Below are positions 4,361 to 60,100 of a stretch of 64,000 nt of DNA, one piece after another. The stretch is taken from NCBI GenBank assembly GCA_002269645.1, contig NIVC01002371.1, forward strand, positions 85,281 through 149,280, in the 5' to 3' direction. Origin of the DNA: Macrostomum lignano (taxonomy: Eukaryota). The notes beneath the pieces were generated by a model. The model worked only from the letters and a program-made list of their open reading frames with translations, was not told the origin of the DNA and did not search any database. The stretch's first letter is position 1. The number at the start of each line of letters is the position of its first letter. A program made the position numbers and the translations under genes.

Positions 4361-10718
<6,358 letters not shown>

Positions 10719-35500: not shown

Positions 35501-36376
35501 ACTCTAACAGCCTCCTGACAGTACTCCAACAGCCTCCTGACAGTACTCTAACAGCCTCCTGACAGTATTCTAACAGCCTCCTGACAGTACTCTAACAGCC
35601 TCCTGACAGTACTCTAACAGCCTCGTGACAGTACTCTAACAGCCTCCTGACAGTACCCTAACAGCCTCCTGACAGTATTCTAACAGCCTCCTGACAGTAC
35701 TCTAACAGCCTCCTGACAGTACTCTAACAGCCTCGTGACAGTACTCTAACAGCCTCCTGACAGTACCCTAACAGCCTCCTGACAGTACTCCAACAGCCTC
35801 CTGACAGTACCCTAACAGCCTCCTGACAGTACTCTAACAGCCTCCTGACAGTACTCTAACAGCCTCCTGACAGTACTCTAACAGCCTCCTGACAGTACCC
35901 TAACAGCCTCCTGACAGTACTCCAACAGCCTCCTGACAGTACCCTAACAGCCTCGTGACAGTACTCTAACAGCCTCCTGACAGTACTCTAACAGCCTCCT
36001 GACAGTACTCTAACAGCCTCGTGACAGTACTCTAACAGCCTCCTGACAGTACCCTAACAGCCTCCTGACAGTACTCTAACAGCCTCCTGACAGTACTCTA
36101 ACAGCCTCCTGACAGTACTCTAACAGCCTCCTGACAGTACTCTAACAGCCTCGTGACAGTACTCTAACAGCCTCCTGACAGTACTCTAACAGCCTCCTGA
36201 CAGTACTCTAACAGCCTCCTGACAGTACTCTAACAGCCTCCTGACAGTACTCTAACAGCCTCCTGACAGTACTCTAACAGCCTCCTGACAGTACTCTAAC
36301 AGCCTCCTGACAGTACTCTAACAGCCTCCAGACAGAATGAAATTCCTGATGCAATAGACTCACAGTCGTGGCCCAT
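32504..36376 (-). CDS. Innexin B, 3 coding exons; alternative first exon at 38845-38833
   Basis: Exons 36376-36364 (ATG GGC CAC GAC T|GTGAGT), 35409-35089 (CTGCAG|CC GAA GAG...A|GTGAGT) and 33504-32504 (CCCCAG|AC TAC TAC CAA TGG); all phases match. Motifs: PIQCY, YAENYCW, YYQWVPF, FPRVTFCD, LNEKLYIFLWFW. Confidence 0.92.
34353..35082. repeat. 12-bp satellite (GGCAGATAGACA)n directly abutting the innexin B donor
   Basis: About 60 copies; on the gene strand GTGAGT is followed immediately by CTATCTGCCTGT units. Confidence 0.97.
35452..36335. repeat. 22-bp satellite (TGACAGTACTCTAACAGCCTCC), array 1
   Basis: About 40 copies in innexin B intron 1. Confidence 0.97.
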
Positions 36377-36878
36377 AGGTTTTTGGAGAAGATTAATTCA
36401 ATATATATCACAAAGCAATTGTTAAATGGTGCAAATATTCTGTTTTACTTTGGGTTTTTATGCTACGGTTGATGCATTAAACTATAACTGTAATAGCTAT
36501 ATACACGAAATTTATACGACTGCGAATGCATGTACATGACCTGTATATTTGCACAATATATGCACAGAGAGAGAAAGAGGGTTGGCAGATGAGAAAAGAA
36601 GAAAAAATTCTAACTTAGAGAAGAGAAAAACCCTAAAAGGTAAGAAAAAGCAATCGACCAAAGAAAAGCACACAATGAGCCACGCGCCACGAGTAGGTGG
36701 AGCATAAAACATCATTGTGTAGTTGGCTCATATTAATTTATATAATAGTAAACTCAGCTTCCAATAAGTATGCGCGAATAGAAGGATCATGAAGCATAAG
36801 CTGGGGAGGGAGTTGTACAAATCGCGTACTCGAGATGAGCTGCGTACAGCACTGGCATGAGGGGCAGAACGGGAGACA
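36330..36878 (-). promoter_or_regulatory. Innexin B proximal promoter/first-exon block, copy 1
   Basis: Contains the MGHD micro-exon; near-identical to 38800-39380; truncated at GGGAGACA by satellite array 2. Confidence 0.7.
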
Positions 36879-38805
36879 GCCTCCTGACAGTACTCTAACA
36901 GCCTCCTGACAGTACTCTAACAGCCTCGTGACAGTACTCTAACAGCCTCCTGACAGTACTCTAACAGCCTCCTGACAGTACCCTAACAGCCTCCTGACAG
37001 TACTACAACAGCCTCCTGACAGTACTCTAACAGCCTCCAGACAGTACTCCAACAGCCTCGTGACAGTACTCTAAAAGCCTCCTGACAGTACTCTAACAGC
37101 CTCCAGACAGTACTCCAACAGCCTCGTGACAGTACTCTAACAGCCTCCTGACAGTACTCCAACAGCCTCCTGACAGTACCCTAACAGCCTCCTGACAGTA
37201 CTACAACAGCCTCCTGACAGTACTCTAACAGCCTCCAGACAGTACTCCAACAGCCTCGTGACAGTACTCTAAAAGCCTCCTGACAGTACTCTAACAGCCT
37301 CCAGACAGTACTCCAACAGCCTCGTGACAGTATTCTAACAGCCTCCTGACAGTACTCCAACAGCCTCCTGACAGTACTCTAACAGCCTCCAGACAGTACT
37401 CCAACAGCCTCGTGACAGTACTCTAACAGCCTCCTGACAGTACTCTAACAGCCTCCAGACAGTACTCCAACAGCCTCGTGACAGTACTCTAACAGCCTCC
37501 TGACAGTACTCCAACAGCCTCCTGACAGTACTCTAACAGCCTCCAGACAGTACTCCAACAGCCTCGTGACAGTACTCTAAAAGCCTCCTGACAGTACTCT
37601 AACAGCCTCCAGACAGTACTCCAACAGCCTCGTGACAGTACTCTAACAGCCTCCTGACAGTACTCCAACAGCCTCCTGACAGTACCCTAACAGCCTCGTG
37701 ACAGTACTCTAACAGCCTCCTGACAGTACTCTAACAGCCTCGTGACAGTACTCTAACAGCCTCGTGACAGTACTCTAACAGCCTCCTGACAGTACCCTAA
37801 CAGCCTCGTGACAGTACTCTAACAGCCTCCTGACAGTACTCTAAAAGCCTCCAGACAGTACTCCAACAGCCTCGTGACAGTACTCTAACAGCCTCCTGAC
37901 AGTACTCCAACAGCCTCCTGACAGTACCCTAACAGCCTCCTGACAGTACTACAACAGCCTCCTGACAGTACTCTAACAGCCTCCAGACAGTACTCCAACA
38001 GCCTCGTGACAGTACTCTAAAAGCCTCCTGACAGTACTCTAACAGCCTCCAGACAGTACTCCAACAGCCTCGTGACAGTATTCTAACAGCCTCCTGACAG
38101 TACTCCAACAGCCTCCTGACAGTACTCTAACAGCCTCCAGACAGTACTCCAACAGCCTCGTGACAGTACTCTAACAGCCTCCTGACAGTACTCTAACAGC
38201 CTCCAGACAGTACTCCAACAGCCTCGTGACAGTACTCTAACAGCCTCCTGACAGTACTCCAACAGCCTCCTGACAGTACTCTAACAGCCTCCAGACAGTA
38301 CTCCAACAGCCTCGTGACAGTACTCTAAAAGCCTCCTGACAGTACTCTAACAGCCTCCAGACAGTACTCCAACAGCCTCGTGACAGTACTCTAACAGCCT
38401 CCTGACAGTACTCCAACAGCCTCCTGACAGTACCCTAACAGCCTCGTGACAGTACTCTAACAGCCTCCTGACAGTACTCTAACAGCCTCGTGACAGTACT
38501 CTAACAGCCTCGTGACAGTACTCTAACAGCCTCCTGACAGTACCCTAACAGCCTCGTGACAGTACTCTAACAGCCTCCTGACAGTACTCTAACAGCCTCG
38601 TGACAGTACTCTAACAGCCTCGTGACAGTACTCTAACAGCCTCGTGACAGTACTCTAACAGCCTCCTGACAGTACCCTAACAGCCTCGTGACAGTACTCT
38701 AACAGCCTCCTGACAGTACCCTAACAGCCTCGTGACAGTACTCTAACAGCCTCCTGACAGTACTCTAACAGCCTCCTGACAGTACTCTAACAGCCTCCAG
38801 ACAGA
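36877..38805. repeat. 22-bp satellite, array 2, with a 748-bp (34-mer) higher-order duplication
   Basis: Variant TACTACAA occurs at 37199 and 37947, and GTATTC at 37330 and 38078; both spacings are 748 = 34 x 22. Confidence 0.95.
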
Positions 38806-39380
38806 ATGAAATTCCTGATGCAATAGACTCACAGTCGTGACCCATAGGTTTTTGGAGAAGATTAATTCAATATATATCACAAAGCAATTGTTAATGGTGC
38901 AAATTTTCTGTTTCACTTTGGGTTTTTTTGCTACGGTTGATGCATAAAACTATAACTGTAATAGCTATATACACGAAATTTATACGGCTGCGAATGCATG
39001 TACATGACCTGTATATTTGCACAATGTATGCACAGAGAGAAAGAGAGATGGCAGATGAGAAAAGAAGAAAAATTCTTAACTTAGAGAAGAGAAAAACCCT
39101 AAAAGGTAAGAAAAAGCAAGCGACCAAAGAAAAGCACACAATGAGCCACGCGCCACGAGTAGATGGAGCATAAAACACCATTGTGTAGCTGGCTCAGAAA
39201 ATGCCTCTAGTTTGTATTTATGAGCATTATAAACATATTAATTTATATAATAGTAAACTCAGCTTCCAATAAGTATGCGCGAATAGAAGGATCATGAAGC
39301 ATAAGCTGGGGAGGAGGTTGTACAAATCGCGTACTCGAGATGAGCTGCGTACAGCACTGGCAGGGGCAGAACGGGAGACA
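38800..39380 (-). promoter_or_regulatory. Innexin B promoter/first-exon block, copy 2; also the divergent upstream region of Mab-21 gene 1
   Basis: ATG GGT CAC GAC T|GTGAGT at 38845-38827; carries a ~48-bp segment absent from copy 1; continues into unique sequence up to the ATG at 39514. Confidence 0.7.
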
Positions 39381-39513
39381 CAAGCGGGGACGAAATGGGG
39401 GATATTTAAGCGAGTGCCCGCCCACAACGAGGAGTTGGCGAGAACGCTGCGCTGCTAGGGGAGTTACAAAAGTGCACGGACTGAATCCGAAAACAACAAC
39501 ACGGCGACCCCGC

Positions 39514-42500
39514 ATGGAGAGCCGATCTCATTACATTGCCACGCAGAGGCGTTTAAAATTTATTGTAAGAGCTTTTAATATTGCTGATCGAGATGATTGC
39601 GTCATGGTCTCAGCCGATGAAGACGAACTGTTTAAGCAGCATTGCCACACTGTAGACAGAATAGTGACAGCTCTGTGTCAGGCTGTAGACAGCAAACTGG
39701 ATTTTGACTGTCCCTGCGGCAGTTTGACGTCCGCATTGCTCAGCATCTGCAGTCACCACATAGGCTTCCGCTGCTGTCAGAATGCTGTGGCAAAGTACGC
39801 GGCCACGAGTGACTTTTTTAGTTCGCTAGCGCAGCTCGACTGTGCCGCTGGAACGACTAAAAATTCGCCAGATTATAAAGACCTGGTAACTGGAACTGTC
39901 TTTCTTGTGTAATATACTCACTCACTCACTCACTCCCTCATGAACTCACTCATGAACTCACTCATAAACTCACTCATAAACTCACTTACTCACTCACTCA
40001 CTCATGAACTCACTCATGAACTCACTCATGAACTCACTCATGAACTCACTCATGAACTCACTCATGAACTCACTCATGAACTCACTCATGAACTCACTTA
40101 CTCACTCACTCACTCATGAACTCACTCATGAACTCACTCATGAACTCACTCATGAACTCACTTATGAACTCACTCATGAACTCACTCATGAACTCACTCA
40201 TGAACTCACTCATGAACTCACTCACTCATGAACTCACTCATGAACTCACTCATGAACTCACTCATGAACTCAATCATGAAATCACACATGAAATCACTCA
40301 TGAACTCACTCATGAACTCACTCATGAACTCACTCATGAAATCACTCATGAACTCACTCATGAACTCACTCATGAACTCACTCATGAACTCACTCATGAA
40401 CTCACTCATGAACTCACTCACTCATGAACTCACTCATGAAATCACTCATGAACTCACTCATGAACTCAATCATGAACTCACTTACTCACTCACTGATGAA
40501 CTCACTCATGAACTCACTTATTAACTCACTCATTAACTCACTCGTGAACTCACTTATGAGCTCACTCATTAACTCACTCATGAACTCACTTATGAGCTCA
40601 CTCATTAACTCACTCATGAACTCACTCATGATCTCACTCATGAACTCACTCATGAACTCACTCATGAACACACTCATGAACTCACTCATGAACTCACTCA
40701 TGAACACACTCATGAACTCACTCATGAACTCACTCATGAACACACTCATGAACTCACTCATGAACTCACTCATGAACTCACTCATGAACACACTCATGAA
40801 CTCACTCATGAACTCACTCATGAACTCACTCATGAACACACTCATGAACTCACTCATGAACTCACTCATGAACTCACTCATGAACACACTCATGAACTCA
40901 CTCATGAACTCACTCATGAACTCACTCATGAACACACTCATGAACTCACTCATGAACTCACTGATGAACTCACTCATGAACTCACTCATGAACTCACTCA
41001 TGAACTCACTCATGAACTCACTCATGAACTCACTCATGAACTCACTCATGAACACACTCATGAACTCACTCATGAACTCACTCATGAAATCACTCATGAA
41101 CTCACTCATGAAATCACTCATGAACTCACTGATGAACTCACTCATGAACTCACTCATGAACTCACTCACTCACTCACTCATGAAATCACTCATGAACTCA
41201 CTCATGAACTCACTCATGAACACATGACCTCACTTATAAATTCGCTCATCAACTTGTGAACTCACTCAATCACTAATTCATAAACTTCAGCTTGTCGATC
41301 AGTGCCATTTCACAAGTAAGATCCGGTGCTTCATCAGTCTGGCTCATTCCGCTGTCTGCCTCTCCACTTCAATCGATTATGAATCGCTGCTGAGTCACCC
41401 GAGTTGGAAGTTTTTGGCGCACTGCCTCGCTAATATTGGCGATGACAGGATTGCAGAGCTGTTCTGGCAGCGAGCCTTGAAGCAAGCTGCGATCGACGGT
41501 CAACCAAAGCTAGTGGAGCGCTACCACAGCAAGCTGGCAGTCGGTCAACGCAGAAACGAGTTCTGTCAAGGCCTGATTGCTGATCTGGCCCTGCATGGCA
41601 ACACTGCGGCGCTGCAGGCTTTGGCTGCAACAATTTCGGACGATTTTAAGAGAGACCTGTGCTGCAGTAAGTCGACAGCCAAGGCTGCCCGTGCGGGCCG
41701 GTTCGAGGCTGCGGTTCAGCTGTTGCTATGCATCGCTAAATCGTCGGGCACTCACTCGTACATCAGTATTCGGCGAGCATCAAATTTAATGAATCCAGTC
41801 AAGAGAAGATTTTTCGAAAAGCTGTTGCTCATTGCTGAACAGAGGGGTCGGACGGAGGAGTTTCTGCGACTGGTGAAACATCTTGATGGGTAGGAGCCGG
41901 CTTGAGTAGTATTTCAACCATATGATTTTAACTGATAAAAACTGACTTGGAAAGCGATGCGCGTTACAGTAGCTACAGACCGGTAAACAAGTATTAATTG
42001 GGTTGTTAGGGTACATATTTAAGATGATAGATGACGTACTGAAATGATTGAAGGGGTCCATAATGATGATAGAACAGGTGGTGAGACGATAGAACAGGTG
42101 GTGAGACGATAGAACAGGTGGTGAGACGATAGAACAGGTGGTGAGACGATAGAGCAGGTGGTGAGACGACAGAATAGGTGGTGAGACGATAGAACAGGTG
42201 GTGAGACGATAGAGCAGGTGGTGAGACGATAGAACAGGTGGTGAGACGATAGAACAGGTGGTGAGACGATAGAGCAGGTGGTGAGACGACAGAACAGGTG
42301 GTGAGACGATAGAGCAGGTGGTGAGACGATAGAACAGGTGGTGAGACGATAGAACAGGTGGTGAGACGATAGAACAGGTGGTGAGACGATAGAACAGGTG
42401 GTGAGACGATAGAGCAGGTGGTGAGACGATAGAACAGGTGGTGAGACGATAGAACAGAAATGGAGACGATAGAACAGGTGGTGAGACGATAGAACAGGTG

Positions 42501-45500
42501 GTGAGACGATAGAACAGGTGGTGAGACGATAGAACAGAAATGGAGACGATAGAACAGGTGGTGAGACGATAGAACAGGTGGTGAGACGATAGAACAGGTG
42601 GTGAGACGATAGAACAGAAATGGAGACGATAGAACAGGTGGTGAGACGATAGAACAGAAATGGAGACGATAGAACAGGTGGTGAGACGATAGAACAGACA
42701 ATAGAAGAGACACTACATATATTACCGCACACCCCTTAGGACTTCTAATGAGCAGATCTGTCTGAAATACCTGGCTGAAGCAGCCTTTTTCTCTGGCCGA
42801 CTCCACCTGCTTCCATCTCTGGTGGCTGACTTGCCCAACCAGGGCGTGAAGATCCGCGTCCTTAGACTTTTATTAAACGAATCCGATGCGGTCACAGAGC
42901 AGCACATCGCGATTGGTCTGAAAATTTTACCTCGAATAGAAAGCCCAGCAAATCGTTGGCGGTTCTGCTTGGAGGCTGCCGAGAGAGTCGCCAGGTTAGG
43001 CCGCAGCAACCTTCTAGAAGAGCTAATCAAACTGCTGCCGCCTCCGCTTCCCGATGATCAGCTTTTGGAGAGAAGAATTACTCCGAAGCAGAAATTGCTA
43101 ATATTGGTAGCAGAAACCGCGGCAACCGGCGGCGACCTTCGGACTGCCGCTTGGGCGGCGGGGACTGCAGATTGTGCAGCAATGGAGGATCAGTGCCTCG
43201 ACAGGGCCAGGCTGGCTGCACAGGCAAGACATCAACTGAGCGTGGCTGTCAGCCTGACTCGACTGATTAAGGACGATGGAGCCAGGTAATAATTTTGATT
43301 CATTGTGGCTAAACTGGGAGGCTGAGGATTTGGGGATTGGGAAGCTGGGGATCGGGAATCTGAGTATTTCCAGCTAAGAATCTGAGAATTACTCGTAAGA
43401 ATCTGGGGATTAAGAATCTTGGGATTAAGAATCTAGGGATTAAGAATCTTGGGATTAAGAATCTTGGGATTAAGAATCTAGGGATTAAGAATCTTGGGAT
43501 TAAGAATCTGGGGAAATAAGAATCATGGGATTAAGAATCTGAGGATTAAGAATCTGGGGATTAAGAATCTTCAGGGATTAAGAATCTAGGGATTAAGAAT
43601 CTGGGGATTAAGAATCTTGGGATTAAGAATCTAGGGATTAAGAATCTTGGGATTAAGAATCTGGGGAAATAAGAATCTTGGGATTAAGAATCTGAGGATT
43701 AAGAATCTGGGGATTAAGAATCTGGGGATTAAGAATCTGAGGATTAAGAATCTGAGGATTAAGAATCTGAGGATTAAGAATCTGGGGATCGGAAATCTAG
43801 GGATTAAGAATCTGAGGATTAAGAATCTGGGGATTAAGAATCTTGGGATTAAGAATCTGGGGATTAAGAATCTTGGGATTAAGAATCTTGGGATTAAGAA
43901 TCTGAGGATTAAGAATCTGGGGATTAAGAATCTAGGGATTAAGAATCTGGGGAAATAAGAATCTTGGGATTAAGAATCTGAGGATTAAGAATCTAGGGAT
44001 TAAGAATCTGGGGAAATAAGAATCTTGGGATTAAGAATCTGAGGATTAAGAATCTGGGGATTAAGAATCTGGGGATTAAGAATCTGGGGAAATAAGAATC
44101 TTGGGATTAAGAATCTGGGGATTAAGAATCTGGGGATTAAGAATCTGAGGATTAAGAATCTGGGGATTAAGAATCTAGGGATTAAGAATCTGGGGATTAA
44201 GAATCTGGGGATTAAGAATCTGAGGATTAAGAATCTGAGGATTAAGAATCTGAGGATTAAGAATCTGGGGATTAAGAATCTGGGGATTAAGAATCTGAGG
44301 ATTAAGAATCTGAGGATTAAGAATCTGAGGATTAAGAATCTGAGGATTAAGAATCTGGGGATTAAGAATCTGAGGATTAAGAATCTGGGGATCGGAAATC
44401 TAGGGATTAAGAATCTGAGGATTAAGAATCTGGGGATTAAGAATCTGGGGATTAAGAATCTGGGGATTAAGAATCTGGGGATTAAGAATCTGAGGATTAA
44501 GAATCTGAGGATTAAGAATCTGGGGATCAGGAATCTGGGGATCGAAAATCCATATGAGAAATCCGGGACCGGGAGCTTCGATCATGGGCTGAAAAATCAG
44601 GCGACTGCAATGGGATCTGAGTTGAGCAGGTCGCCAATTCAGATAAGTGTACCCCTCGCTCAAATTTTACAGCGAGTCCGCAAGAGTAAACGCCTACAAA
44701 AACTGTCTAAAAAAATCTCAATCATCGCTAATCAGAAATGGAACAACAAACCATGGCATCTATCTGGCCGACAATTCGACGAAGAATTTGTACCTGCTGA
44801 AATTTTTAGCTGAAACTGTCGCCATAGGAGAGGACTACTATGTAAAAGTAAGCAGCTACAGTATTAGATTTCGATCTATTCGGAAAGGAAAACAAAAACT
44901 TACAGGTTAAAAAGTATAGGTTTGAATGGGATGGGGTATACTAGCTTGCAATAAGTAACGGTCTATTTTTCTGTCTGTTCTCTGCCAAAGCAAGTAGTGA
45001 TGCGCTCTTGCTTATTCTTATTGAGTAATAATCGTACTTATTCAATCGGTTCAGTTAAGTGTTCAACTATTCACCGTTTTTGTGGGATTGGGCGGGTGCA
45101 ATCTTATCGATTAACTTTGCGGTCGATTTTTACAGCCACCACCACTCTTTTTCAAGCTTCTGCTTGAACACGAGCGTTTTCATTAGCCAATAGCAGCTCT
45201 AGTCATGTGTTGGGGTGGGTGCAATCTTATCGATTGACTATAGCCAACTGACTATTCAACCACCCAACCCTTTCCTGTGGGGTGGGTGCAATCTTATCTC
45301 TGGTTGAGTCAGCTTTACAGCCAGCCACACCCAGTCTATGATTAGCCTATTTACATGTTTTTACCATTGGAAATAGCATTGGAATACCTTACGAAATTTA
45401 GGATGGGTTGCAATTTTATCGAGAAATTGATTAATTAATTAGTCTAAGTCATTTCTACAGCCACAAGCCTTTCTTTTTCTATTAGCAGCCCCAGCCCAAC

Positions 45501-48500
45501 TTTGATTTTACACTTTAATAATGTAAACTGGTCGACTTCCCAGGAGCTGGTCGATCTTAACCAGAACCTTAAACAGATTTCTTCGAAAAAAACTCTTGGA
45601 AAAACATTTGCGTGCAAGAAATACTTAGAAGATCTTTTATAAATTGCGAATTGTTAATTTGCAAATATTAAAATAACATTCGATAACTTCATGCACTAAC
45701 TACACTCAAGAACGAATGGCTATTGGTTATTTATTTATTCATGCTAAAATATTCAGAAAATCCTGCTCAACGCTAATCAGCACCAGCTTCATCAGCTGCT
45801 GTGCTCCAGCCTCTCTCACGGTCACTCCGCCCTGGCTACCGCCATATTGCCAAGTATTCAAGATGTCAACAAAAGGCTGGATGACCAACTCTGCAGCACT
45901 ACTCTGATGCTTGTCGCCGAGCTGGGCCACTGCCACGTCATTGCCAAACTATTGGAGCGAGGAGCTGACAGAGCGGTGCGAGACACTCAGGGCTGCACAG
46001 CGCTGGACAGAGCTCGGCTGTGCGGGCGGAACCAAGCAACTTGGGTGCTGGCAGAGGAGGGTAACGTTGAATTGACATCCCCTGCTTCAACTGGGTGAGT
46101 ATAGTGTGTCAGTGTGTCAGTTTGAGCAGTTGGTCTTTTGACTCACTGAGGCAAATTAAGTCATCAAATCATCAAATCAAATAAAATTAAATGCAAGAGT
46201 TGACTCAAAAGTTGTCAGTCAAGCTGTGCTTTTACCATTCTTGCCTTGCAGCATTCACTTTTAAAAATTCATTTCAGAACCTTTGAACAGGCAGTGCCTG
46301 AAAAGAGTCAAATGTGAGTACAATTACATCCTTTCCGCAATTAAGATTTGAATTGAACGCGAAGCTTCATAAATTAATCATTCGGCTTACCAATAGTTTC
46401 TATACATGGGGTAAAAGGTACACACTACTTAGTAGAAAGTACAGTGCATGTATAGGCAATAGATGCGCAGCTTAAAAAGCGATACTAAAGTTCGTCTCAA
46501 CCTACCTGCAGTGACATTGACCTACACGATTCTCAGCTCAGCGAGAAGCTGCACTGGGCCCTCACGAGCTCCGGCTTCACCCAGAGCAGAGCGGCTTGTC
46601 AGCAGAGGCTGGCAGACTTACTGGAGCGGACAGCCGCTTGTCTGAGCCTCTCCAAACCCCGTCTGATCGGCAGCTTTGCTGACGGCTGGGGCTGCAGTCT
46701 GACACGGCTGAATGCGAGGCTTTCTGATGGGTCCGGGATCGACTGGCTGACACCCGTTACGGCTGCTGCTGGCTGCCCAGGTGCGACCAAGCTGCGACTG
46801 GACTTCACCGGAGACCCTCCCGATAAAGAGGAGGGCGCCCAGCTGCTCACTGTAGAAGATGACGCATCGGGATGTGAGTCAAAGGAGTCCGCAATCAGCC
46901 GTAAATCATATCACCAATACGACTTAGTCGGTACCCAAAACTGTCAAACCATTTGTTGTCTTGCAGTTGGCCAGCAGCCTCGAGTGGCCTCAGCTCCGTG
47001 CGGTGTCAAGCCAGCTACCAGCACTACCTTGGCATTTCGGAGTCCTCAATCAGCGAGCATTCTGCTCTTGCCTCTGGTTTCCATTCGTGATGCAGCCCTA
47101 ATCCACCTGCAGCAAACATTCGCTATCGAAGAAAAGCAGCGGATGCGACAGCTGAACACAGTCCAGGGCCAGCTGTTCATTCTGCTCAAGTTCCTACTCA
47201 AAAACTACCTGGCCGAGGTGTCGCAGTGTCCGGGACTAACGAGTCATCACGTCAAGCACCTGCTGTTCTACCTGATTGAGACTCACGGCTCGTGGAACTG
47301 GCAAATGTGGCAGCCGCACAAGCTGATAGAACTCGCCAAAGAGGCCCTGGACTTGATGATGAAGTTCCTGGACTCGACCAGCTCAAGTGATGATGGTTGC
47401 ATGCCCAGCTTCTTCAAGCCACATGTTCAGCTGCAGCTACAATGGACTGGAAGACCTGCGGATGAGGTCAAGACTCGAATTCGAGCTGAGCTGCTCAAAG
47501 CTCGGAGTGACCTCGACCCCGCAGTCAAGAAGCTGATGAGCCACCTGAAGCCTCTGGATGATGATGACAAGCTGTATTTCGACTTGTTCACTCTGCTACC
47601 TTTGACTCTGCCTCCCGATGTGCCTCATGACCGGAAATCGCAAGCTCCAGACGCTAATGAGCTCGCTGGACTTTACTGCTCAGTGGCGGCGGCTTTGCGA
47701 GCTCTGCAAGCTGCAGACGAAGTGGATGGCGAAGGAGCTCTGATGCGGCAGCTTGAAAGTTGGTACGAGTGCAGCTGGTGTCACTGCGCGGTCAGGTGTT
47801 TAGCTGTGATGGCGCAGCTGAAGTACAGGAACAAAACTGCGGCGAAGGAGACGCTGAGCGAATTGGTAAGAGACCAGGTGAGAAAACGGCCTCATTTTTG
47901 GTGGCGAATTTCAGCTTCGATTGATGAACTTCGATTGATGAACTAAACTAAACAGATTCTAGTGACTCCATTTCTGAACATCTAAAACCCTCCCTTTATC
48001 AGGTGATGAGCAGCGGCTGGACGGTCGAAGACCTCAGCAAAGAGGCCATATCGGAGACTCAAAGCTGGCGATGGCCGTTGAGCACCGATTGGGCCTGGAG
48101 GTTCTGCCTGCCCTGCGACCGGCGGCCCAGCCTGCCGTTTCTACCCAGGTTCACCGAGTCGCTGCTCACTGCTCGACTCTGCAGCCGCTCACCGATGCAG
48201 CGCCACCTGTACTTGAACTTCCGCTGTCTGAGCTGGAGTCTGCAAGCTGAGCTGCTGGGCGGTCGGCGCGCGGCATGCATTCGAGCCGACGACGGAGCTG
48301 CGGGCTCGGGATTCGCCAAGAGGCTGGCGCAGCAGTGGTTCCGGGAGCTGCAGGCTGAGTCTGCGGGATCGCAGCTGGACACGGAGGAGCTGGCGACGCT
48401 GGCCCACTACACTGACAGCCCGGTGCAGCTCCGCTTCTGCCTAGAGCGAATGGAGGCGGTTGTTGCTAGGGGGCCACGAGTTGCCATGGACAGCTGCGAC

Positions 48501-48560
48501 AACGAGAGGCTGGAGCGAGTCAGCAGGAAGTTGGGCCGCTTTGGTTGTTTTATTGGTTAA
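39514..48560 (+). CDS. Alpha-solenoid + ankyrin + Mab-21/cGAS-like (cGLR) protein, copy 1; 8 exons, 1286 aa
   Basis: Exons 39514-39885, 41291-41889, 42740-43285, 44673-44847, 45757-46094, 46512-46873, 46967-47877 and 48003-48560; all GT-AG, phases consistent, total 3861 nt. Ankyrin: TTLMLVAELGHCHVIAKLLERGADRAVRDTQGCTAL. NTase-like: IGSFADGWG...SGIDW. Mab-21 C-lobe: FAIEEK...QGQLFILLKFL...LTSHHVKHLLFYLIE...W...MPSFF. Confidence 0.82.
39915..41225. repeat. 12-bp satellite (ATGAACTCACTC)n in intron 1 of Mab-21 gene 1
   Basis: Direct reading. Confidence 0.97.
42066..42700. repeat. 20-bp satellite (GATAGAACAGGTGGTGAGAC)n in intron 2 of Mab-21 gene 1
   Basis: Direct reading. Confidence 0.97.
43320..44545. 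repeat. 15-bp satellite (GGGATTAAGAATCTG)n in intron 3 of Mab-21 gene 1
   Basis: Direct reading. Confidence 0.97.
45060..45470. repeat. Degenerate repeat with four copies of GGGTGCAATCTTATC in intron 4 of Mab-21 gene 1
   Basis: Motif near 45095, 45217, 45284 and 45406, usually followed by a TACAGCCA-like block. Confidence 0.6.
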
Positions 48561-49134
48561 ACTCGACCAAAGCGATTTAGAAAGGATGCTGTCTTTCGGT
48601 GGTGTTTTGGTGGTGCTTTTAGCAGAAAGACGTTTGTTCGGCTGCAACATTGGACACAAAAATAATTATATTATAATCTATGAAATTATTTCGATATCTG
48701 AAATATAGTGTCAAAAATATAATATTGCAGTTACGCATGGTTTATGCTAGATAGAGGTTTGACTTCGCGCTTCGGAAGAACCAAAGAATCCCTTCTGGAA
48801 AAAGCATATAGCTACTTTTAGTAGGCATAGATATGTTACTGCTCAAGCATTATAGAATTGACATTGTTCCTACCTGAAGCAGATGTGCATTCCCGTTCAC
48901 TGGCAGTAAGTACTCAGACACTGCAATGAACATGCAAAGTACATTCAAGCCGGAGAGAATGGACTCAGAGAGATGAGTTGGGCAGAAGTTGGCAAGGTGA
49001 GAAGAATGAGCCGAAAATAGCACACGCCAGAGGGCTATAACCGAATCAAACCGAAAGTCAGACCTGCCAGTTCTGTGCAAGAAAAATTTTCCCCAAGAAA
49101 TTGCCAGACAAAGTGAATATTTCTTTTGGTTGCC

Positions 49135-52100
49135 ATGCAAGCAAATCGATGCCTAGTAAGGCGCTTGAAGCTGCTCAGAAGAGCTTTGCGAATAGTCGAT
49201 CAAGCTGACTGCAACAACGGAGACCAGCTGGATGACGAGACGATGCTCAAACGGCACTGCGACATCCTTGACAGCTTGGTGGACGCAACCAAAGATATTT
49301 TAAACTACCAGGCTACGATTTCTGAGCACCATTGTCAGTGCGTTTTGATGGCACTGCTGAATATTACCCGTCACAGCGTCGGCAACAGGTGCTGTCAAAA
49401 TGCTGTAGTGAAGTACGCGGCCACATGCGACAGAGAAGAAGCGCAACAGAGAGAGTCTAACAGTGCAACTGCTAATGGCCTGGACTGCTCAACTGCTCTG
49501 CCGCCCATGGTAACTAGCAGAGTGCACAGTCCATTGCTCTAGCCTATTCACCCAATCATGAACTCATTCAGGAACTCACTATCTTTGAGGAATTGAACTC
49601 ACTCGTGAATCCACTCTTAAACTCACTTGTCACCAAATCACTCATTGAACTCAAATATGCCCTTACTAATGAATTCACTGATAAATTCACCAATCAACTC
49701 ACTTATGAGCTCCACTATGAACTCAAATCTAGCAAGAACAGGCCGTTGAAAACGAGGGTTAATTTTGAAAGAAAAATTAACGAAAAGTAACTTTGGTTGG
49801 TTAATTTACCGGAAATTAACTTGCGAAAAACGAGTTTACGTTAATTAATCACAGACACTTTGTAGGTTAATTTCGATTAACAAACTGGTAAATTAAAGTA
49901 AATTTACGATCCGTAAAGTAAAGTAACGTAAAGTACGTAAAGTAACGTTCATTTTTCTGAACTTACGTTAATCAACCTTCAAGCTATATTAGGTCATTGC
50001 TCCTCATATTACGTTTTCAATGGGAGGCAAGAACCAAAGCTTTTATGGAATCCAAAAAATCGACCCTTCCAGCCCGATGCGATTCGACGGGAGCTGCCGG
50101 ACAGACGTGAAGAGTGCTACATCAGGCTGGCAGACGCCGCTGGCTCATTCGCCGTCTCAGTTCAAGACTCCTCCGCCGCGGAATCCAGTTGGAAAGTCCA
50201 AGGCCACTGCCTTAAGAAGCTGGCCAAATCGAATTACCGACTGCAAGCTGCTTGCCGTCGCAGGGCCATTGAACAAGCTGCTCGGGATGGTCGCGTTGAG
50301 GTTCTCGATCGGTACATGCGAAAGGTTCCTGCGATGGATCGAAGCTTTTTGTGCACATGCTTGATTGAGGAGCTGGCACTGAGCGGCAAAGTGGACGCTC
50401 TGAGAACCCTGGCCATGGCAATGCGTGAAACGGACAGCAGAAACTGGTGCTGCTTTCGGATGGCAGCCAATGCCGCTCTTGCTGGACGGCTCGAAGCTTC
50501 CGTTCTGCTGCTTCAGAGCATCACCTTTGGCGAAAAGTTGAGGAAAAAGTGCTGCAAGAGGCTGGTGCTCATTGCAGAGGAGCAGCATCAGTTGGAAGAG
50601 CTTTTTCGGCTGCTTAAAAACACAAGCGTGTAAGCAATGTTAAAATTCTGGATAACGATTTTGGCTGTGCCGGGACTATTTAGAAAGGCACTACCGACAT
50701 TGGAGCAGTTTAAAAAAAAACTGTAGACATTGGAAATATTTCAAAACACTACGGATACTGGGGTCATTTTAGAAAGGCACTGCAGACATTGAGACCCTTT
50801 AGAGAGACACTGCAGACACTGGGACCCTTTAGGAAGACACTGCAGACATCGAGACCCTTTAGAGAGACACTGCAGACACTGGGACCCTTTAGGAAGACAC
50901 TGCAGACATCGAGACCCTTTAGAGAGACACTGCAGACACTGGGACCCTTTAGGAAGACACTGCAGACATCGAGACCCTTTAAAGAGACACTGCAGACACT
51001 GGGACCCTTTAGGAAGACACTGCAGACATTGACACCCTTTAGGAAGACACTACAGACATTGAGACCTTTCATAAAGGCACTACAGACATTGGGACCCTTT
51101 ATGAAGACACTGCAGACACGTGACTATTTGGAAAGCCACAAGAAATCATTGGACCACTTTGGGAAGACACCGAGGCCAAAGAATAGACTGTACTCTGCAG
51201 ATCAACTTCGCGGGCAACCCCTGGTGCTTGCAGGGTGCTCGAGCGGATCAACTGCCTGTGGATGCTGGCGGAGGCAGCCGCCAAGAACGGCTTCCTGGCG
51301 CATCTCCCGGACGTCGCAGCGGCGGTAGCCAGCCTGACATTCAAGAGCGGCATTGTGGTCCTACTCATTCAGAAATCTGCCGCGCCAACTGAGCAGCGCC
51401 TGAGAACCGCGATGAAGATTCTGCCGCAGATTAAGGATGCCGCTGAGCGGAGCCATCTCTTCCAGATTTTGGTCAGGTGCGCTGCTCGTTTTGGAAGTTG
51501 CGTCCTCATAGAAGAAACGCTGAGCCTGCTGCCAAGCGAGTCCGAGGACGGGGACTCGACAGCTGAGCCGTCGCACCGAGACGAGCTGCTGTCTGCGGCT
51601 GCAGAGGCTGCGGCCGGTGAGGGCAAACTGGAGACAGCGATCTGGGCCGCTGAGGCCATCGACAGCGAATCAGAGGCGCATCTGTGCCTGGCTGCGGCAG
51701 CTGAGGCAGCTCAGATGAGCAACCGGCTTGATGAGGCTGTCAGCCTGGCTCGGCTGATCAAGGATGCCAGCGTCAGGTGGGGTCGGGGTGTCAGATGTAG
51801 TAAATTCTGGACGTGGAAATTGAGAACTGGGGAAGTGGGAGTTGAGGATGTGGGGATAGGGGATGTGGGGGTTGGAGCTGTGGGAGTTAAGGATGTGGGA
51901 GTTCGGGGATGTGGGAGTTTGGGATGTGGGAGTTAAGGATGTGGGAGTTCGGGGATGTAGGAGTTGAGGATGTTGGATTTGGGGATGTGGGAGTTGAGGA
52001 TGTGGGAGTTGGGGATGTGGGAATTGGGGATGTGGGAGTTGGGGATGTGGGAGTTGAGATGTGGGAGTTGGGGATGTGGGAGTTGGGTTGTGGGAGTTGG

Positions 52101-55100
52101 GGATGTGGGAATTGGGGAAATCCTCTACATGCTATTGAGACTTTAGAATCAAGGGATTAAGGAAAAATCAGATGATTGGATTTTTAATTAATAATTTGCA
52201 AATTGCGAGGCTGAACAACTTACTCTCACTACTCAAACTCAATCAATCAGAAAGTCAGCTCAGGTCAGGGCCTACAGACGCTGTCTGCCAGAGCAGCAGG
52301 TAGCCGAGCTCAGTGAGACCGTTGTTAATCATGGCTGCTTCCTGGCGGACAATTGTATCACGAATTCAAGCCTGCTGGCTCTTGTGGCTGCTACAGTTGC
52401 CATGGGCGACCAGTTCTACCTGCAGGTCTGCAACTGCTGTGATGTCTATAAAAAGCTATCCACAATTTCATATGCATAAATTTCGAAATATTTATTAGAA
52501 AATCCTGCTCAACGCTAATCAGCACCAGCTTCATCAGTTACTGTGTTCAAGCCTCTCTAACGGTCACTCCGCCCTGGCTACCGCCATATTGCCAAGTATT
52601 CAAGATGTCAACAAAAGGCTGGATGACCAACTCTGCAGCACTACTCTGATGCTTGCCGCCGAGCTGGGTCACTGCCACGTCATTGCCAAACTATTGGAGC
52701 GAGGAGCTGACAGAGCGGCGCGAGACACTCAGGGCTGCACAGCGCTGGACAGAGCTCGGCTGTGCGGGCGGAACCAAGCTGCTTGGGTGCTGGCAGAGGA
52801 GGGTAACGTTGAATTGACATCCCCTGCTTCAACTGGGTGAGTATAGTGTGTCAGTGTGTCAGTTTGAGCAGTTGGTCTTTTGACTCACTGACGCAAATTA
52901 AGTCATCAAATCATCAAATCAAATAAAATTAAATCCAAGAGTTGACTCAAAAGTTGTCAGTCAAGCTGTGCTTTTACCATTCTTGCCTTGCGCATTCACT
53001 TTTAAAAATTCATTTCAGAACCTTTGAACAGGCAGTGCCTGAAAAGAGTCAAATGTGAGTACAATTACATCCTTTCCGCAATTAAGATTTGAATTGAACG
53101 CGAAGCTTCATAAATTAATCATTCGGCTTACCAATAGTTTCTATACATGGGGTAAAAGGTACACACTACTTAGTAGAAAGTACAGTGCATGTATAGGCAA
53201 TAGATGCGCAGCTTAAAAAGCGATAATAAAGTTCGTCTCAACCTACCTGCAGTGACATTGACCTACACGATTCTCAGCTCAGCGAGAAGCTGCACTGGGC
53301 CCTCACGAGCTCCGGCTTCACCCAGAGCAGAGCGGCTTGTCAGCAGAGGCTGGCAGACTTACTGGAGCGGACAGCCGCTTGTCTGAGCCTCTCCAAACCC
53401 CGTCTGATCGGCAGCTTTGCTGACGGCTGGGGCTGCAGTCTGACACGGCTGAATGCGAGGCTTTCTGATGGGTCCGGGATCGACTGGCTGACACCCGTTA
53501 CGGCTGCTGCTGGCTGCCCAGGTGCGACCAAGCTGCGACTGGACTTCACCGGAGACCCTCCCGATAAAGAGGAGGGCGCCCAGCTGCTCACTGTAGAAGA
53601 TGACGCATCGGGATGTGAGTCAAAGGAGTCCGCAATCAGCCGTAAATCATATCACCAATACGACTTAGTCGGTACCCAAAACTGTCAAACCATTTGTTGT
53701 CTTGCAGTTGGCCAGCAGCCTCGAGTGGCCTCAGCTCCGTGCGGTGTCAAGCCAGCTACCAGCACTACCTTGGCATTTCGGAGTCCTCAATCAGCGAGCA
53801 TTCTGCTCTTGCCTCTGGTTTCCATTCGTGATGCAGCCCTAATCCACCTGCAGCAAACATTCGCTATCGAAGAAAAGCAGCGGATGCGACAGCTGAACAC
53901 AGTCCAGGGCCAGCTGTTCATTCTGCTCAAGTTCCTACTCAAAAACTACCTGGCCGAGGTGTCGCAGTGTCCGGGACTAACGAGTCATCACGTCAAGCAC
54001 CTGCTGTTCTACCTGATTGAGACTCACGGCTCGTGGAACTGGCAAATGTGGCAGCCGCACAAGCTGATAGAACTCGCCAAAGAGGCCCTGGACTTGATGA
54101 TGAAGTTCCTGGACTCGACCAGCTCAAGTGATGATGGTTGCATGCCCAGCTTCTTCAAGCCACATGTTCAGCTGCAGCTACAATGGACTGGAAGACCTGC
54201 GGATGAGGCCAAGACTCGAATTCGAGCTGAGCTGCTCAAAGCTCGGAGTGACCTCGACCCCGCAGTCAAGAAGCTGATGAGCCACCTGAAGCCTCTGGAT
54301 GATGATGACAAGCTGTATTTCGACTTGTTCACTCTGCTACCTTTGACTCTGCCTCCCGATGTGCCTCATGACCGGAAATCGCAAGCTCCAGACGCTAATG
54401 AGCTCGCTGGACTTTACTGCTCAGTGGCGGCGGCTTTGCGAGCTCTGCAAGCTGCAGACGAAGTGGATGGCGAAGGAGCTCTAATGCGGCAGCTTGAAAG
54501 TTGGTACGAGTGCAGCTGGTGTCACTGCGCGGTCAGGTGTTTGGCTGTGATGGCGCAGCTGAAGTACAGGAACAAAACTGCGGCGAAGGAGACGCTGAGC
54601 GAATTGGTGAGAGATCAGGTGAGATATGTGACCCGCTTTGGTGATAGGTATCACACGATTTTAGTGTTGCCGAGACTGGGGGTCAAGTAAAGTTCTCCAT
54701 GACTCATTGTAGCTTCACTTATAAAGCAAACAAGCACCAATGCGATTAGCCTCCATTGCTTCGGTAGGTATGAGGGGCTTTCAATAGAAATTTCCCAACA
54801 AGTTCAACATCTCAAGATGCATATAATCACCGCCGAGCTCGATCGATTGTTGCGATTGTTGGAAGGCTTCTCAGGACTCGTTCCTACTCCAGTCGCAGTG
54901 TTGACAATGATCTGATTACGGGAAAGCTTAAATGACCTCTGCTACACCGGACTTTGCTTGACCTTAAATGACCTTTGCCTTATCTGACTATGATTGAACT
55001 TACGTCATTTTCGTCAAGGGAGTGGAAAACTTACCAGCTTCTAGAGGTTAAAAGATAAACTGTACTGTTGAGATTAAAATGACCTTGGAGCAGGTGCACT

Positions 55101-56245
55101 ACAGGATGTAAACGTAAAAGCGTGTTGATAAAAAAGGTGAAAGCATGTGCTCGAGCAAAGATGTACGTCCACTGACATTTATTTTTGAAAACACTTCGTA
55201 CGTTTCGGAAGCTTTTTGATAGCAGATTGTGATGAAGAAGGCCGTAACAATCAGCTCCGTGCTACATGTAGATGTAGATATTGTTAACTGCCACGCCAAG
55301 ACCAAAGATCAGAGCGGAGCGGTGGGTCTTAGGGGTGATTGTGCCTTCCGAATGACCGAGACCAGATTCTTGGCTAGGATACTGAAGACGCAAGTCAACT
55401 TCAGAGCTAAGAGATTCAATTGGCTTGTTAAGAAGAGGGCTTTGCGATAAACCAGGATGCAATTGCACAGGCGTTTCAGACCTCACAAGGCCACTTAGCG
55501 TACTTATTCAGTAGGACTGCAATTCAAGTTGTGACTATGGGTTCCAGACGTCAGTAAAAGGCACCGAGAATTTTTTTGGTTAAGCCAATGCAAAGACAGC
55601 AGCTAAGGGCTGTAAAGACTCAAGCATGCATGAAATCAACAAGCATTGCTCACTTGTTAAATGCTATCATAACAATTCTAGGTGATGAGCAGCGGCTGGA
55701 CGGTCGAAGACCTCAGCAAAGAGGCCATATCGGAGACTCAAAGCTGGCGATGGCCGTTGAGCACCGATTGGGCCTGGAGGTTCTGCCTGCCCTGCGACCG
55801 GCGGCCCAGCCTGCCGTTTTTACCCAGGTTCACCGAGTCGCTGCTCACTGCTCGACTCTGCAGCCGCTCACCGATGCAGCGCCACCTGTACGTGAACTTC
55901 CGCTGTCTGAGCTGGAGTCTGCAAGCTGAGCTGCTGGGCGGTCGGCGCGCGGCATGCATTCGAGCCGACGGAGCTGCGGGCTCGGGATTCGCCAAGAGGC
56001 TGGCGCAGCAGTGGTTCCTGGAGCTGCAGGCTGAGTCTGCGGGATCGCAGCTGGACACGGAGGAGCTGGCGACGCTGGCCCACTACACTGACAGCCCGGT
56101 GCAGCTCCGCTTCTGCCTGGAGCGAATGGAGGCGGTTGTTGCTAGGGAGCCACGGGTTGCCATGGACAGCTGCGACAACGAGAGGCTGGAGCGAGTCAGG
56201 AGGAAGCTGGACAGCTTTGATCGCTGCTTCCTAGCTTTTAGTTGA
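49135..56245 (+). CDS. Alpha-solenoid + ankyrin + Mab-21/cGAS-like (cGLR) protein, copy 2; 8 exons, 1285 aa
   Basis: Exons 49135-49509, 50073-50629, 51201-51776, 52251-52425, 52499-52836, 53253-53614, 53708-54618 and 55682-56245; same intron phases as copy 1, total 3858 nt. Exon 4 is 175 nt in both copies and homologous (VRAYRRCL...NHGCFLADN vs VNAYKNCL...NHGIYLADN). Confidence 0.82.
50765..51130. repeat. 30-bp minisatellite organised as a 60-bp dimer in intron 2 of Mab-21 gene 2
   Basis: Alternating GAGACCCTTTAGAGAGACACTGCAGACACT and GGGACCCTTTAGGAAGACACTGCAGACATC. Confidence 0.92.
51830..52120. repeat. 15-bp G-rich satellite (GGGGATGTGGGAGTT)n in intron 3 of Mab-21 gene 2
   Basis: Direct reading. 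Confidence 0.92.
54925..55010. repeat. Short TGACCTT...CTGACTATG minisatellite remnant, same family as 58335-58535
   Basis: Shared text GACCTTAAATGACC and CTGACTATG. Confidence 0.65.
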
Positions 56246-57182: not shown

Positions 57183-60100
57183 TCACAGAGCCGTGTAATA
57201 CTTCTTCTTTTTCTTCTTCTTTTGCTGCTCAGAATCTGCTCTGGGTCTGTCAGCTTCCATTGGCTTTATCTCCACAGACACCTGCAAGGTATTTAGGGAT
57301 ATTTATAAGATATTTAAGGAGGAATTTTTATTATTCCAAAATGGGATTTGATTATTCTAATATGGGATTTGATTATTCTAATAAGGGATTTGATTATTCT
57401 AATAAGGGATTTGATTATTCTAATAAGGGATTTGATTATTCTAATAGGGGATTTGATTATTCTAATAAGGGATTTGATTATTCTAATAGGGGATTTGATT
57501 ATTCTAATAAGGGATTTGATTATTCTAATAAGGGATTTGATTATTCTAATAAGGGATTTGATTATTCTAATAGGGGATTTGATTATTCTAATAAGGGATT
57601 TGATTATTCTAATAGCGGATTTGATTATTCTAAATAGCGGATTTGATTATTCTAATAAGGGATTTGATTATTCTAATAGGGGATTTGATTATTCTAATAA
57701 GGGATTTGATTATTCTAATAGGGGATTTGATTATTCTAATAGGGGATTTGATTATTCTAATATGGGATTTGATTATTCTAATAGCGGATTTGATTATTCT
57801 AATAGGGGATTTGATTATTCTAATATGGGATTTGATTATTCTAATAGCGGATTTGATTATTCTAATATGGGACTCGAAAGTTTGATTAGGTGATCTGAAG
57901 GTTTCAATTCGAGTTTCTAATGGTAAATTTAAATATTTTGGTATTTAGAGTCCAAACGAATATTTGGGATTCCAGGCTCTTACCTGATTAGGTTTGACAG
58001 CCTCATCGGCGCTTCCGCCGCCTCCTTGAGCAACAAAGTTGAGCAGCTCCCTCTGGCCTGTCCGCTGGAAGTGCACGCTGATCGGTGGCCATTCGCCGCG
58101 TTCGAGTTTTAGTTGCCGGGCCACTCGCTCGAACTCCTTGGGCTTGCTAATCAACCGGCGACCAGCCCGGTGGACGAGTCGGCTGAACCAGACGGACTCA
58201 ACTAGTTGCTCAACCAGAAACGCGATCAGAAAGTTCATCAGGATGGCGCCGACAAGGACAAATTTTATTGACAGATTTGGGTTGTCTCGGGGCGCGTCCC
58301 AGGTCTGCGGGTTGCGGACAGCGGGACGGGGACTTGACCTTGAATGACCTTTGCTTCACCTGACTATGGTTGACCTTAAATGACCCCTGCTACACCTGAC
58401 AATGGTTGATCTAGTATGACCATTGCTTCACCTGACTATTGCTGACCTTGTAAGACCTCCGCTATACCTATGGTTGACCTTGACCTTTGCTACACCTGAC
58501 TATGGTTGACCTTGAATGACCTCTGCTACACGTGCCTAGTAGTCCCTTGACTCCATACGACTTCGAACGCAACAACAAAAGTACACGATGTAATAAATTT
58601 AATGTAGCAAATTAATTCACCTCTAGCAAGTTTCCCAGCCAATCAGTGGGAGCGAAGATCACAAAGAGATTAACACCAACTACTATAGCGATGTTGATCA
58701 TGAAAGCGTCTGGAATAGCAAATATTGCACAAGAAGGATTATGATTTGAGTCTTATCTAGAAGTAATAATCGCTTTATAACTACCTTGCCTAGATAAAAC
58801 TCCCTATAAGAATTATGTTATTATGGCTAAAGCTTCCCGTCAGGAATCATTGACTTCATAAGCTTCCCAAATGAAATTGATGACTTCATCTGCTTCCTCA
58901 GATGAAGATAATCATTCCAAAAGCTTCCCATACGGAAACAATGATCCCAAAAGCTTCCCATACAGAAAAAATGATTCCAAAAGCTTTCAATACGGAAACA
59001 ACGATTCTAAAAGCTTCCCATACCGAAACAACGATTCTAAAAGCTTCCCATACGGAAACAATGATTCCAAAAGCTTCCTATACGGAAACAATGATTCTAA
59101 AAGCTTCCCATACGGAAACAATGATTCTAAAAGCTTCCCATACGGAAACAACGATTCTAAAGCTTCCCATACGGAAACAACGATCCCAAAAGCTTCCCAT
59201 ACGGAAACAATGATTCCAAAAGCTTCCCATACGGAAACAACGATTCTAAAGCTTCCCATACGGAAACAACGATCCCAAAAGCTTCCCATACGGAAACAAT
59301 GATTCCAAAAGCTTCCCATACGGAAACAACGATTCCAAAAGCTTTCCATACGGAAACAACGATCCCAAAAGCTTCCCATACGGAAACAATGATTCCAAAA
59401 GCTTCCCATACGGAAACAACGATCCTAAAAGCTTCCCATACGGAAACAACGATCCCAAAAGCTTCCCATACGGAAACAACGATCCCAAAAGCTTCCCATA
59501 CGGAAACAACGATTCCAAAAGCTTCCCATACGGAAACAACGACCCCAAAAGCTTCCCATACGGAAAAATTATTCTAAAAGCTTCCCATACGGAAACAACG
59601 ATCCCAAAAGCTTCACATACGGAAACAACGATTCTAAAAGCTTCACATACTGAAACAACGATCCCAAAAGCTTCACATACGGAAACAACGATCCCAAAAG
59701 CTTCACATACGGAAACAACGATTCTAAAAGCTTCCCAAACGGAAATAATAACCGACTGACTCACAGTTGGTCAGCATGCTCCGTCTGTAAGGAGCGGACT
59801 TGGAGAACACCACAGCCAGGATGATGTACTGATTAACTGATATGAGAAACACGGCAGTATTCTCATAGCAAGCCATCTGATCCGAGTTCGAGTCGTACAC
59901 AAACGGATAGAACCAAGACTGCCATCTCACGTAGAAATAGGCCAGAGTTTGAAAGGCCACGAAAATGCCGCACTGTAAAGCAATGGACGAACAGGTCACG
60001 AATGACAGCAGACGGTGGCTGGGCGCCTCCTGAGCGATGCTCTCGCAAGCAGCCGTGTAGGAGAAGGTGACAAACAGTGTCGTGATGATAAACAGGTCAA

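Follow-up and report, generated by a model that had tools for sequence, protein, structure and literature searches.

The window analyzed here, 64,000 nucleotides (nt) of Macrostomum lignano contig NIVC01002371.1 (positions 85,281 to 149,280, forward strand), contains two tandem genes on the + strand, gene A at 39514-48560 and gene B at 49135-56245, whose products join an N-terminal array of ankyrin (ANK) repeats to a module with the nucleotidyltransferase (NTase) fold of Mab-21 proteins and cGAS-like receptors (cGLRs). Both genes are intact, and tblastn with the two proteins found only these two copies within the window. In the raw sequence, the region from 39.5 to 56.2 kb consists of short + strand open frames interrupted by satellite arrays. 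The gene models were built by listing GT-AG pairs compatible with open frames, with conservation between A and B as a guide; in both genes every intron is bounded by GT and AG and all junctions are in phase. The gene A model has 8 exons and encodes 1286 amino acids (aa), exactly as described in a first-pass annotation of this sequence, while the gene B model, built in parallel to A, encodes 1274 aa, 11 fewer than the 1285 given there. That annotation also described the exons as scattered through satellites, and satellites do fill introns 1-3 of gene A and introns 2-3 of gene B.

Gene structure and transcript support

The best matches to the predicted proteins are themselves M. lignano proteins: BOX15_Mlig001378g1 (P0001; 95% identity, 100% coverage) and two UniProt entries named "ANK_REP_REGION". 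A word-indexed search with the full protein returned only three near-identical M. lignano models and generic ANK matches, and literature searches on Mlig001378 and on STING in Macrostomum returned nothing useful. P0001 is located on contig NIVC01002225.1 (L001) of the same assembly, GCA_002269645.1, which carries the same tandem pair and the same neighbors (cytochrome P450 and innexins) as the window. P0001 covers all gene A exons, plus a 36-nt cassette micro-exon, in one open reading frame (ORF). Since the GenBank annotation of this assembly derives from RNA-seq transcripts assembled with genome guidance (StringTie/TACO, then TBONE, then TransDecoder; PMC5730564), P0001 is evidence from transcripts that one gene A mRNA contains both the N-terminal and the ANK-Mab21 exons, and the first-pass proposal that they form a single gene holds for gene A. 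The public models disagree with one another: P0002 skips segments, and P0003 (UniProt) fuses the 3' end of A to the 5' end of B. The gene A stop and the gene B start are separated by 575 bp (48561-49134), and given this short distance, the P0003 fusion and the polycistronic precursors that M. lignano produces and resolves via trans-splicing (PMC5730564), A and B may be co-transcribed.

In gene A, exon 1 (39514-39885) encodes a Cys-rich N-terminus that is exclusive to the A/B pair; its frame stays open upstream to an ATG at 39340 (39340-39513), P0001 extends into this segment, and the start codon is uncertain. A diverged ankyrin-like solenoid begins in exon 2 (41291-41889) and runs through exon 3 (42740-43285) and exon 4 (44673-44847) to exon 5 (45757-46094), which encodes the ANK repeats that Pfam can detect. 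The optional 36-nt cassette micro-exon (TFEQAVPEKSQI), present in P0001 and not in P0002, lies at 46278-46313; the in-frame 36-nt micro-exon is also present in intron 5 of gene B (53019-53054), with perfect splice signals in both genes. Exon 6 (46512-46873) encodes spine helices and the first half of the NTase core, including LIGS, G752 and D754. Exon 7 (46967-47877) encodes the second half of the core, with S816 and a deletion of ~12 aa, followed by the Mab-21_C helices (residues 866-991) and the start of a C-terminal extension. Exon 8 (48003-48560) carries the remainder of this family-specific extension (DWAWRFCLPCD...YLNFRCLSWSLQAELL) and the stop codon. The small intron between exons 6 and 7 (46874-46966, GTGAGT...TTGCAG) was added to our model after the public models.

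The gene B exons, likewise on the + strand, are exon 1 (49135-49509) and exon 2 (50073-50629), whose junction is confirmed by P0003; exon 3 (51234-51776); exon 4 (52251-52425), which has a weak donor and was positioned by the parallel with gene A; exon 5 (52499-52836), encoding ankyrin repeats; exon 6 (53253-53614), encoding the first half of the NTase core with G738 (53476-53478) and D740; exon 7 (53708-54618), encoding S802 (53761-53763), Mab-21_C and C-terminal extension; and exon 8 with the stop codon (55682-56245). A 12-nt satellite of ~107 copies fills gene A intron 1 (39920-41221), and arrays like it lie at 42068-42697, 43396-44542, 50768-51170 and 51828-52118. High-copy short satellites with 12-, 20-, 15-, 30/60-, 22- and 21-nt units occur in the introns and in the flanks (35450-38804 and 57326-57872), and a 15-nt G-rich array occupies the equivalent position of intron 3 in both genes.

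The C-terminal module has a Mab-21/cGLR-type nucleotidyltransferase fold

Exon 7 matches Pfam Mab-21_C at 25.2 bits (cutoff 24.1). Direct Pfam support for the window proteins is borderline (Mab-21_C at 20.7-25.2 bits against the cutoff of 24.1), and the Mab-21 core profile, PF03281, had no direct match in them; a weak Mab-21_C match was found at the same place in 7/7 paralogues tested. These paralogues belong to a large family. An exhaustive phmmer search, for which the query was the unspliced exon 6-7 ORF (whose spurious 31-aa intron-encoded insert also enters our first AlphaFold2 model), was needed to bring this family out: it gave 89 cluster representatives, of which 61 had E<1e-10, and the family therefore comprises at least 89 clusters. 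Each of the ten clusters sampled is exclusive to M. lignano, and some bear the UniProt name "Mab-21-like HhH/H2TH-like domain-containing". The unit conserved across the paralogues is an entire module of ~600 aa, and the window module matches over all ~600 positions. In paralogues P0008, P0012 and P0018 the order is repeat array, ANK repeats and module, as in A and B.

Profile comparisons connect this family to cGLRs. A 14-sequence family profile matched only cGLR1 (8gjy, E 2.4e-5) and cGAS entries in the PDB, and phmmer of the spliced C-terminal region against the PDB gave chance matches only. When a family core profile that excluded the window protein was aligned by hhalign with six bivalve cGLRs, taken from Supplement 3 of Li et al. 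2023, the match extended over 275 columns with a probability of 99.2 (E 1.2e-19) and paired the GS, the DxD and the third Asp of the two groups; four coral cGLRs matched weakly (E 0.007). An AlphaFold2 model of the window exon 6-7 ORF had a predicted local distance difference test score (pLDDT) of 70.9 and a predicted template modeling score of 0.74, and its best Foldseek matches in the PDB, with probability up to 1.00, were MAB21L1, cGAS, GLD-2, MiD49 and MB21D2, with MAB21L1 (5eom) and MiD49 (4woy) among the top matches. All of the top 21 are nucleotidyltransferase folds. In a whole-protein model built from a deeper alignment, the module has high pLDDT and the expected strands are present.

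Together, these data indicate that the C-terminal module has a Mab-21/cGLR-type nucleotidyltransferase fold and that its family belongs to the cGLR clade, and the fold predicted for exons 6-7 in the first-pass annotation is upheld by Mab-21_C, the family profile, hhalign and AlphaFold2/Foldseek alike. Li et al. recognize cGLRs by an active-site motif, h[QT]GS [X8-20] [DE]h[DE]h [X50-90] h[DE]h, by homology across the NTase core and helix bundle, and by AlphaFold similarity (Li et al. 2023, PMC9980059); the homology and the structural similarity are both present here. Beyond Mab-21_C, residues 992-1286 of A (~47550-48557; DWAWRFCLPCD...FLP.FT...YLNFRCLSWSLQAELL) form a family-conserved extension of ~300 aa for which we found no Pfam or PDB match.

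Catalytic residues are replaced in both proteins

The active-site motif has been called essential for synthesis (Li et al. 2023, PMC9980059). Neither A nor B contains it: LIGS stands in place of h[QT]GS, the first acid is Gly and the third is Ser. Gene A reads L-I-G-S (729-731), G-I-D-W (752-755) and K-P-A-T-S (S816). At the residue before GS, most rows of the family alignment have V, T or F, of which T is the sole [QT] form (20/82), and gene A has I729; the GS itself is invariant in the family and is kept in gene A as G730 and S731. The first and the second catalytic acid are each D in 76/82 family rows, and gene A has G752 (codon GGG, 46735-46737) at the first and D754 at the second. The third acid falls in the motif RPAxD..A...C.YP, which we take to be the equivalent of human cGAS D319; it is D in 41/64 complete rows, with several of the apparent exceptions being misalignments, and in gene A it is S816 (codon AGC, 47020-47022). 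DxD plus D is kept in 41/64 family modules. Gene B matches gene A at these positions (G738, D740 and S802). Both proteins have also lost the CC/C cluster of the family, and a deletion of ~12 residues covers the conserved "VHLVRA" strand.

The triad is complete in the nearest paralogues (P0008-P0013, 38-45% identity), indicating that the loss is specific to the A/B lineage. We considered a frameshift as the source of the degenerate "PATSTTLAFRSPQSAS" stretch and rejected it: no other frame resembles the family, and the loss is thus attributable to divergence and deletion. Judged from their sequences, A and B are most likely unable to synthesize a nucleotide second messenger. The earlier suggestion that these proteins are enzymes making cyclic dinucleotides is unlikely, with two of the three acids replaced, LIGS in the motif and a strand deleted.

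The N-terminal arm is a diverged ankyrin array

Pfam Ank_2 matches exon 5 at E 2.9e-5, just under the gathering score, corresponding to 2-3 ANK repeats, and Pfam has no match, tetratricopeptide repeat (TPR) profiles included, in the N-terminal 564 aa. Over residues 131-564, A and B show homology to the N-terminal arrays of paralogues (P0008, E 3e-15; P0012, E 1e-10). The repeat period of these paralogue arrays is exactly 33 residues, and Pfam Ank_2 recognizes them above its gathering score (E 5e-34 and 3e-26). A hidden Markov model of the 33-aa paralogue unit matched A and B weakly and at scattered places only. We modeled the near-full-length allele P0002 with AlphaFold2 from a 73-row alignment (pLDDT 78.3), and the model contains ~26 short helices from residue 76 to ~484 that continue into canonical ANK repeats, such that the solenoid is unbroken across exons 2-5. 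In a Foldseek search of the PDB with this model, the top 31 matches were all long ankyrin arrays (AnkB with 24 repeats, ankyrin-1 and DARPin fusions), with alignments of 340-676 columns and E ~2e-5, and the first TPR structure (Ski3) appeared at rank 32. The first ~130 residues, a Cys-rich head ("RCCQNAV.KYAAT") common to A and B only, are modeled with low confidence.

The N-terminal arm is therefore a diverged ankyrin-type array of ~550 aa that ends in 2-3 recognizable ANK repeats; of the marks of ankyrin-repeat proteins, the solenoid is present in the model, the ANK profile match in exon 5 and the 33-residue period in the homologous paralogue arrays, and the marks of TPR proteins were not found. 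The first-pass annotation had read ~400 aa of this arm as "TPR-like" repeats, an identity we rejected on the basis of the Pfam result, the 31 ankyrin arrays that outrank the first TPR in Foldseek and the homology to the paralogue arrays. Apart from that label, the order it gave (Cys-rich N-terminus, ankyrin repeats, Mab-21 fold, helical C-terminus) is correct.

Purifying selection and gene conversion

All four copies of the genes (A and B in the window and on L001) are open for >1270 codons and have intact splice sites. Between the window and L001, gene A has a synonymous divergence (dS) of 0.021 and a non-synonymous divergence (dN) of 0.0075, giving dN/dS (omega) of 0.36; the 19 synonymous and 22 non-synonymous changes depart from neutrality (binomial p = 0.0015), and omega is 0.29 in the 3' half of the gene alone. 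Pooling A and B would double-count changes shared through gene conversion. These data indicate that the genes are under purifying selection.

Two tracts of gene conversion link the genes. The first, 45750-47883 in A and 52493-54624 in B, is 99.0% identical with introns 5 and 6 included, and the second, 48001-48543 and 55680-56219, covers exon 8 and is 97.6% identical; the 5' arrays of A and B share only ~37% of their residues. On L001 the tract equivalent to the first lies at 16423-18552 and 25253-27382. Identity is 99.0-99.5% within a contig and 97.8-98.3% between contigs, and 30/55 sites that vary across the four copies group by contig rather than by gene, indicating that conversion continued after the two contigs diverged. 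No tract edge is more than a few bases from an exon boundary. The intron 7 sequences of the two genes are unrelated (125 nt in A, 47878-48002, versus 1063 nt in B, 54619-55681), although the flanking exons are nearly identical, and the gene B version of intron 7 is also present on L001 at 98% identity.

Neighborhood of the pair

The neighboring genes span 5516-35395 and 59724-62800 of the window. They include a cytochrome P450 (25950-27602, - strand) and innexin-like ORFs at 29956-31332 (+ strand), 32504-33490 (- strand) and 34130-35395 (- strand); on L001, Pfam confirms the P450 and the innexins. From ORF translations, further candidates are a kinase-like gene (23637-25319, + strand), phosphatase-like segments (17181-17603 and 21107-21715) and a P-type ATPase (~59.7-62.8 kb, - strand). 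Minisatellite arrays at 8356-9294 and 18036-20991 read open for up to 978 codons on the - strand ("YLSI..." and "CVWILSLSQ..."), and these frames are almost certainly non-coding repeats and not genes.

Discussion

Most cGLRs (87%) are single-domain enzymes, and certain members are fused to tetratricopeptide and ankyrin repeat modules (PMC9980059). Five M. lignano proteins were cloned for the biochemical screen of Li et al. (PAA86972.1, PAA45980.1, PAA57558.1, PAA93208.1 and PAA68676.1; #89-93 in PMC9980059 Supplement 3). All five bear the signature of the family described here, and PAA45980.1 (P0118) falls in the P0067 cluster, one of those returned by phmmer. The ankyrin-cGLR architecture has thus already been described and the family already catalogued as cGLRs, and the first-pass view that the architecture is unusual is not supported. 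The label column of Supplement 3 marks active enzymes (e.g. "01, Pd-cGLR") and is empty in the five M. lignano rows (PMC9980059), so these paralogues are evidently not among the 15 active enzymes of Li et al. In the portions of the Li et al. tables that we examined, the window gene itself is not listed, and M. lignano is absent from the table of cGLR and STING counts. The catalogued proteins come from the same species as the window pair and share the same ~600-aa module (GSxxEGWGNSL...SDID...RPAxD...LRVSTxFLE...QGQLF...YHAKT), and many family members carry ANK arrays N-terminal to it, as A and B do. The catalytic motif is complete in the five cloned proteins. A and B differ from them at two catalytic positions, occupied by G and S, in the absence of the Cys cluster and of one strand, and in a Cys-rich head of their own. 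A and B are therefore not a new class of receptor but members of a catalogued, functionally unexplored flatworm cGLR expansion.

Comparison with other systems bears on what such proteins might do. Like the M. lignano family, the cGLR expansions of bivalves (Crassostrea, Mizuhopecten) are lineage-specific, and the two share profile homology over the NTase core and helix bundle; certain bivalve cGLRs have been shown to be active (Li et al. 2023, PMC9980059). The bivalve proteins compared keep the active-site motif, whereas the window proteins are ~1280-aa repeat fusions in which it is broken. MiD49 and MiD51, the Drp1 receptors, and MAB21L1 resemble A and B in having a nucleotidyltransferase fold without known second-messenger synthesis, and they act as adaptors. 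They differ in having no close sequence kinship to A and B, no ankyrin arrays and no C-terminal extension of ~300 aa. By analogy only, A and B also resemble nucleotide-binding leucine-rich repeat (NLR) and STAND receptors, in which a divergent repeat arm is joined to a conserved, homogenized module within a lineage-specific expansion. The NLR-style layout suggested at first pass fits in its pattern of divergence, but Pfam finds no NACHT or NB-ARC domain in either protein, and the parallel would stay an analogy of layout.

Our data suggest that A and B are probably non-catalytic pseudo-cGLRs that act as scaffolds or regulators. This reading is based on the combination of a Mab-21 module that is homogenized but catalytically eroded with an ankyrin arm that diverges rapidly. 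Each protein consists of the Cys-rich head, the ~550-aa ankyrin solenoid, the Mab-21 NTase core with its helix bundle and the ~300-aa extension. Gene conversion keeps the ANK-Mab21 halves near-identical while the N-terminal arrays diverge. In the model we propose, the variable ankyrin arm would bind different partners or ligands, and the conserved module would serve both proteins as a scaffold or a regulatory surface, perhaps through association with paralogues that are active or fused to caspases. Such fusions exist in the family. P0015 (PAA59752.1) and P0018 (PAA93319.1) have a C-terminal Peptidase_C14 domain (E ~1e-25) together with the module and ANK repeats, and P0099 (PAA80948.1) is a caspase fusion by its UniProt name; the Li et al. 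supplements, as far as they were examined, contain no mention of caspase-fused members. The NTase triads of P0015 and P0018 are degenerate (DxN plus S or T), suggesting that the module can work without catalysis.

Several observations weigh against this reading. Both the loss of activity and the scaffold or regulatory role are predicted from sequence. A and B still have the GS and one catalytic Asp, and activity at a non-canonical site is conceivable. The Foldseek TM-scores (structural similarity) of the domain model are modest (0.33-0.45), reflecting a central core that is poorly predicted with a shallow alignment. The dN/dS estimate comes from just 41 substitutions. Finally, the annotation of L001 calls no gene for gene B, whose expression is therefore putative.

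The strongest competing explanation is that A and B are recently inactivated, functionless copies drifting toward pseudogenes and kept alike by gene conversion. The loss of catalytic residues, Cys cluster and strand would be expected of such copies, as would a central core that is the least conserved part relative to paralogues (30-34% identity against 37-48% for the flanks) and the lack of a transcript model for gene B on L001. However, four copies with frames open over >1270 codons and intact splice sites, dN/dS of 0.36 (p = 0.0015) that falls to 0.29 in the 3' half, and a transcript-derived model for gene A are difficult to reconcile with decay, and we consider this explanation unlikely. 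We regard it as quite unlikely that A and B are functional cGLR enzymes in which the array senses a ligand and the Mab-21 domain makes a cyclic-dinucleotide signal. In favor of an enzymatic role are the supported fold and family assignment, the retained GS and second Asp, purifying selection and the complete triad of most paralogues. Against it, the motif of Li et al. is disrupted at three positions (I for [QT], G as the first acid and S as the third), a conserved core strand is deleted and none of the five canonical paralogues is labeled "active" in the Li et al. table. That the models are mis-joined, with the N-terminal and ANK-Mab21 exons forming separate genes, as the long satellite-filled introns between the 5' exons and the inconsistent public models (P0002 and P0003) might hint, is highly improbable given that P0001 spans all exons in one ORF, that P0008, P0012 and P0018 share the array-ANK-module order, that the AlphaFold2 solenoid is continuous through exons 2-5 and that all junctions are in phase.

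The pseudo-cGLR interpretation can be extended, speculatively, to the family as a whole. Parasitic flatworms have been reported to lack cGAS-STING. Considering this absence together with the large ANK-cGLR expansion and the caspase fusions with degenerate triads, one could imagine, though we hold it to be a long shot, that the Mab-21 module has been repurposed in M. lignano as a nucleotide-independent assembly platform, in which A and B would be sensor or decoy subunits whose diversified ankyrin arms recruit different ligands into inflammasome-like hetero-oligomers with active or caspase-bearing paralogues.

Our results show that the M. lignano cGLR family holds constrained, catalytically degenerate members that combine a conserved module with a fast-diverging ankyrin arm. 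If pseudo-cGLRs regulate or nucleate signaling, this pair would offer a tractable case in a flatworm that is transgenic and amenable to RNA interference, and it could be used to probe roles of the Mab-21 fold beyond enzymes, a question that also concerns MAB21L1/2.

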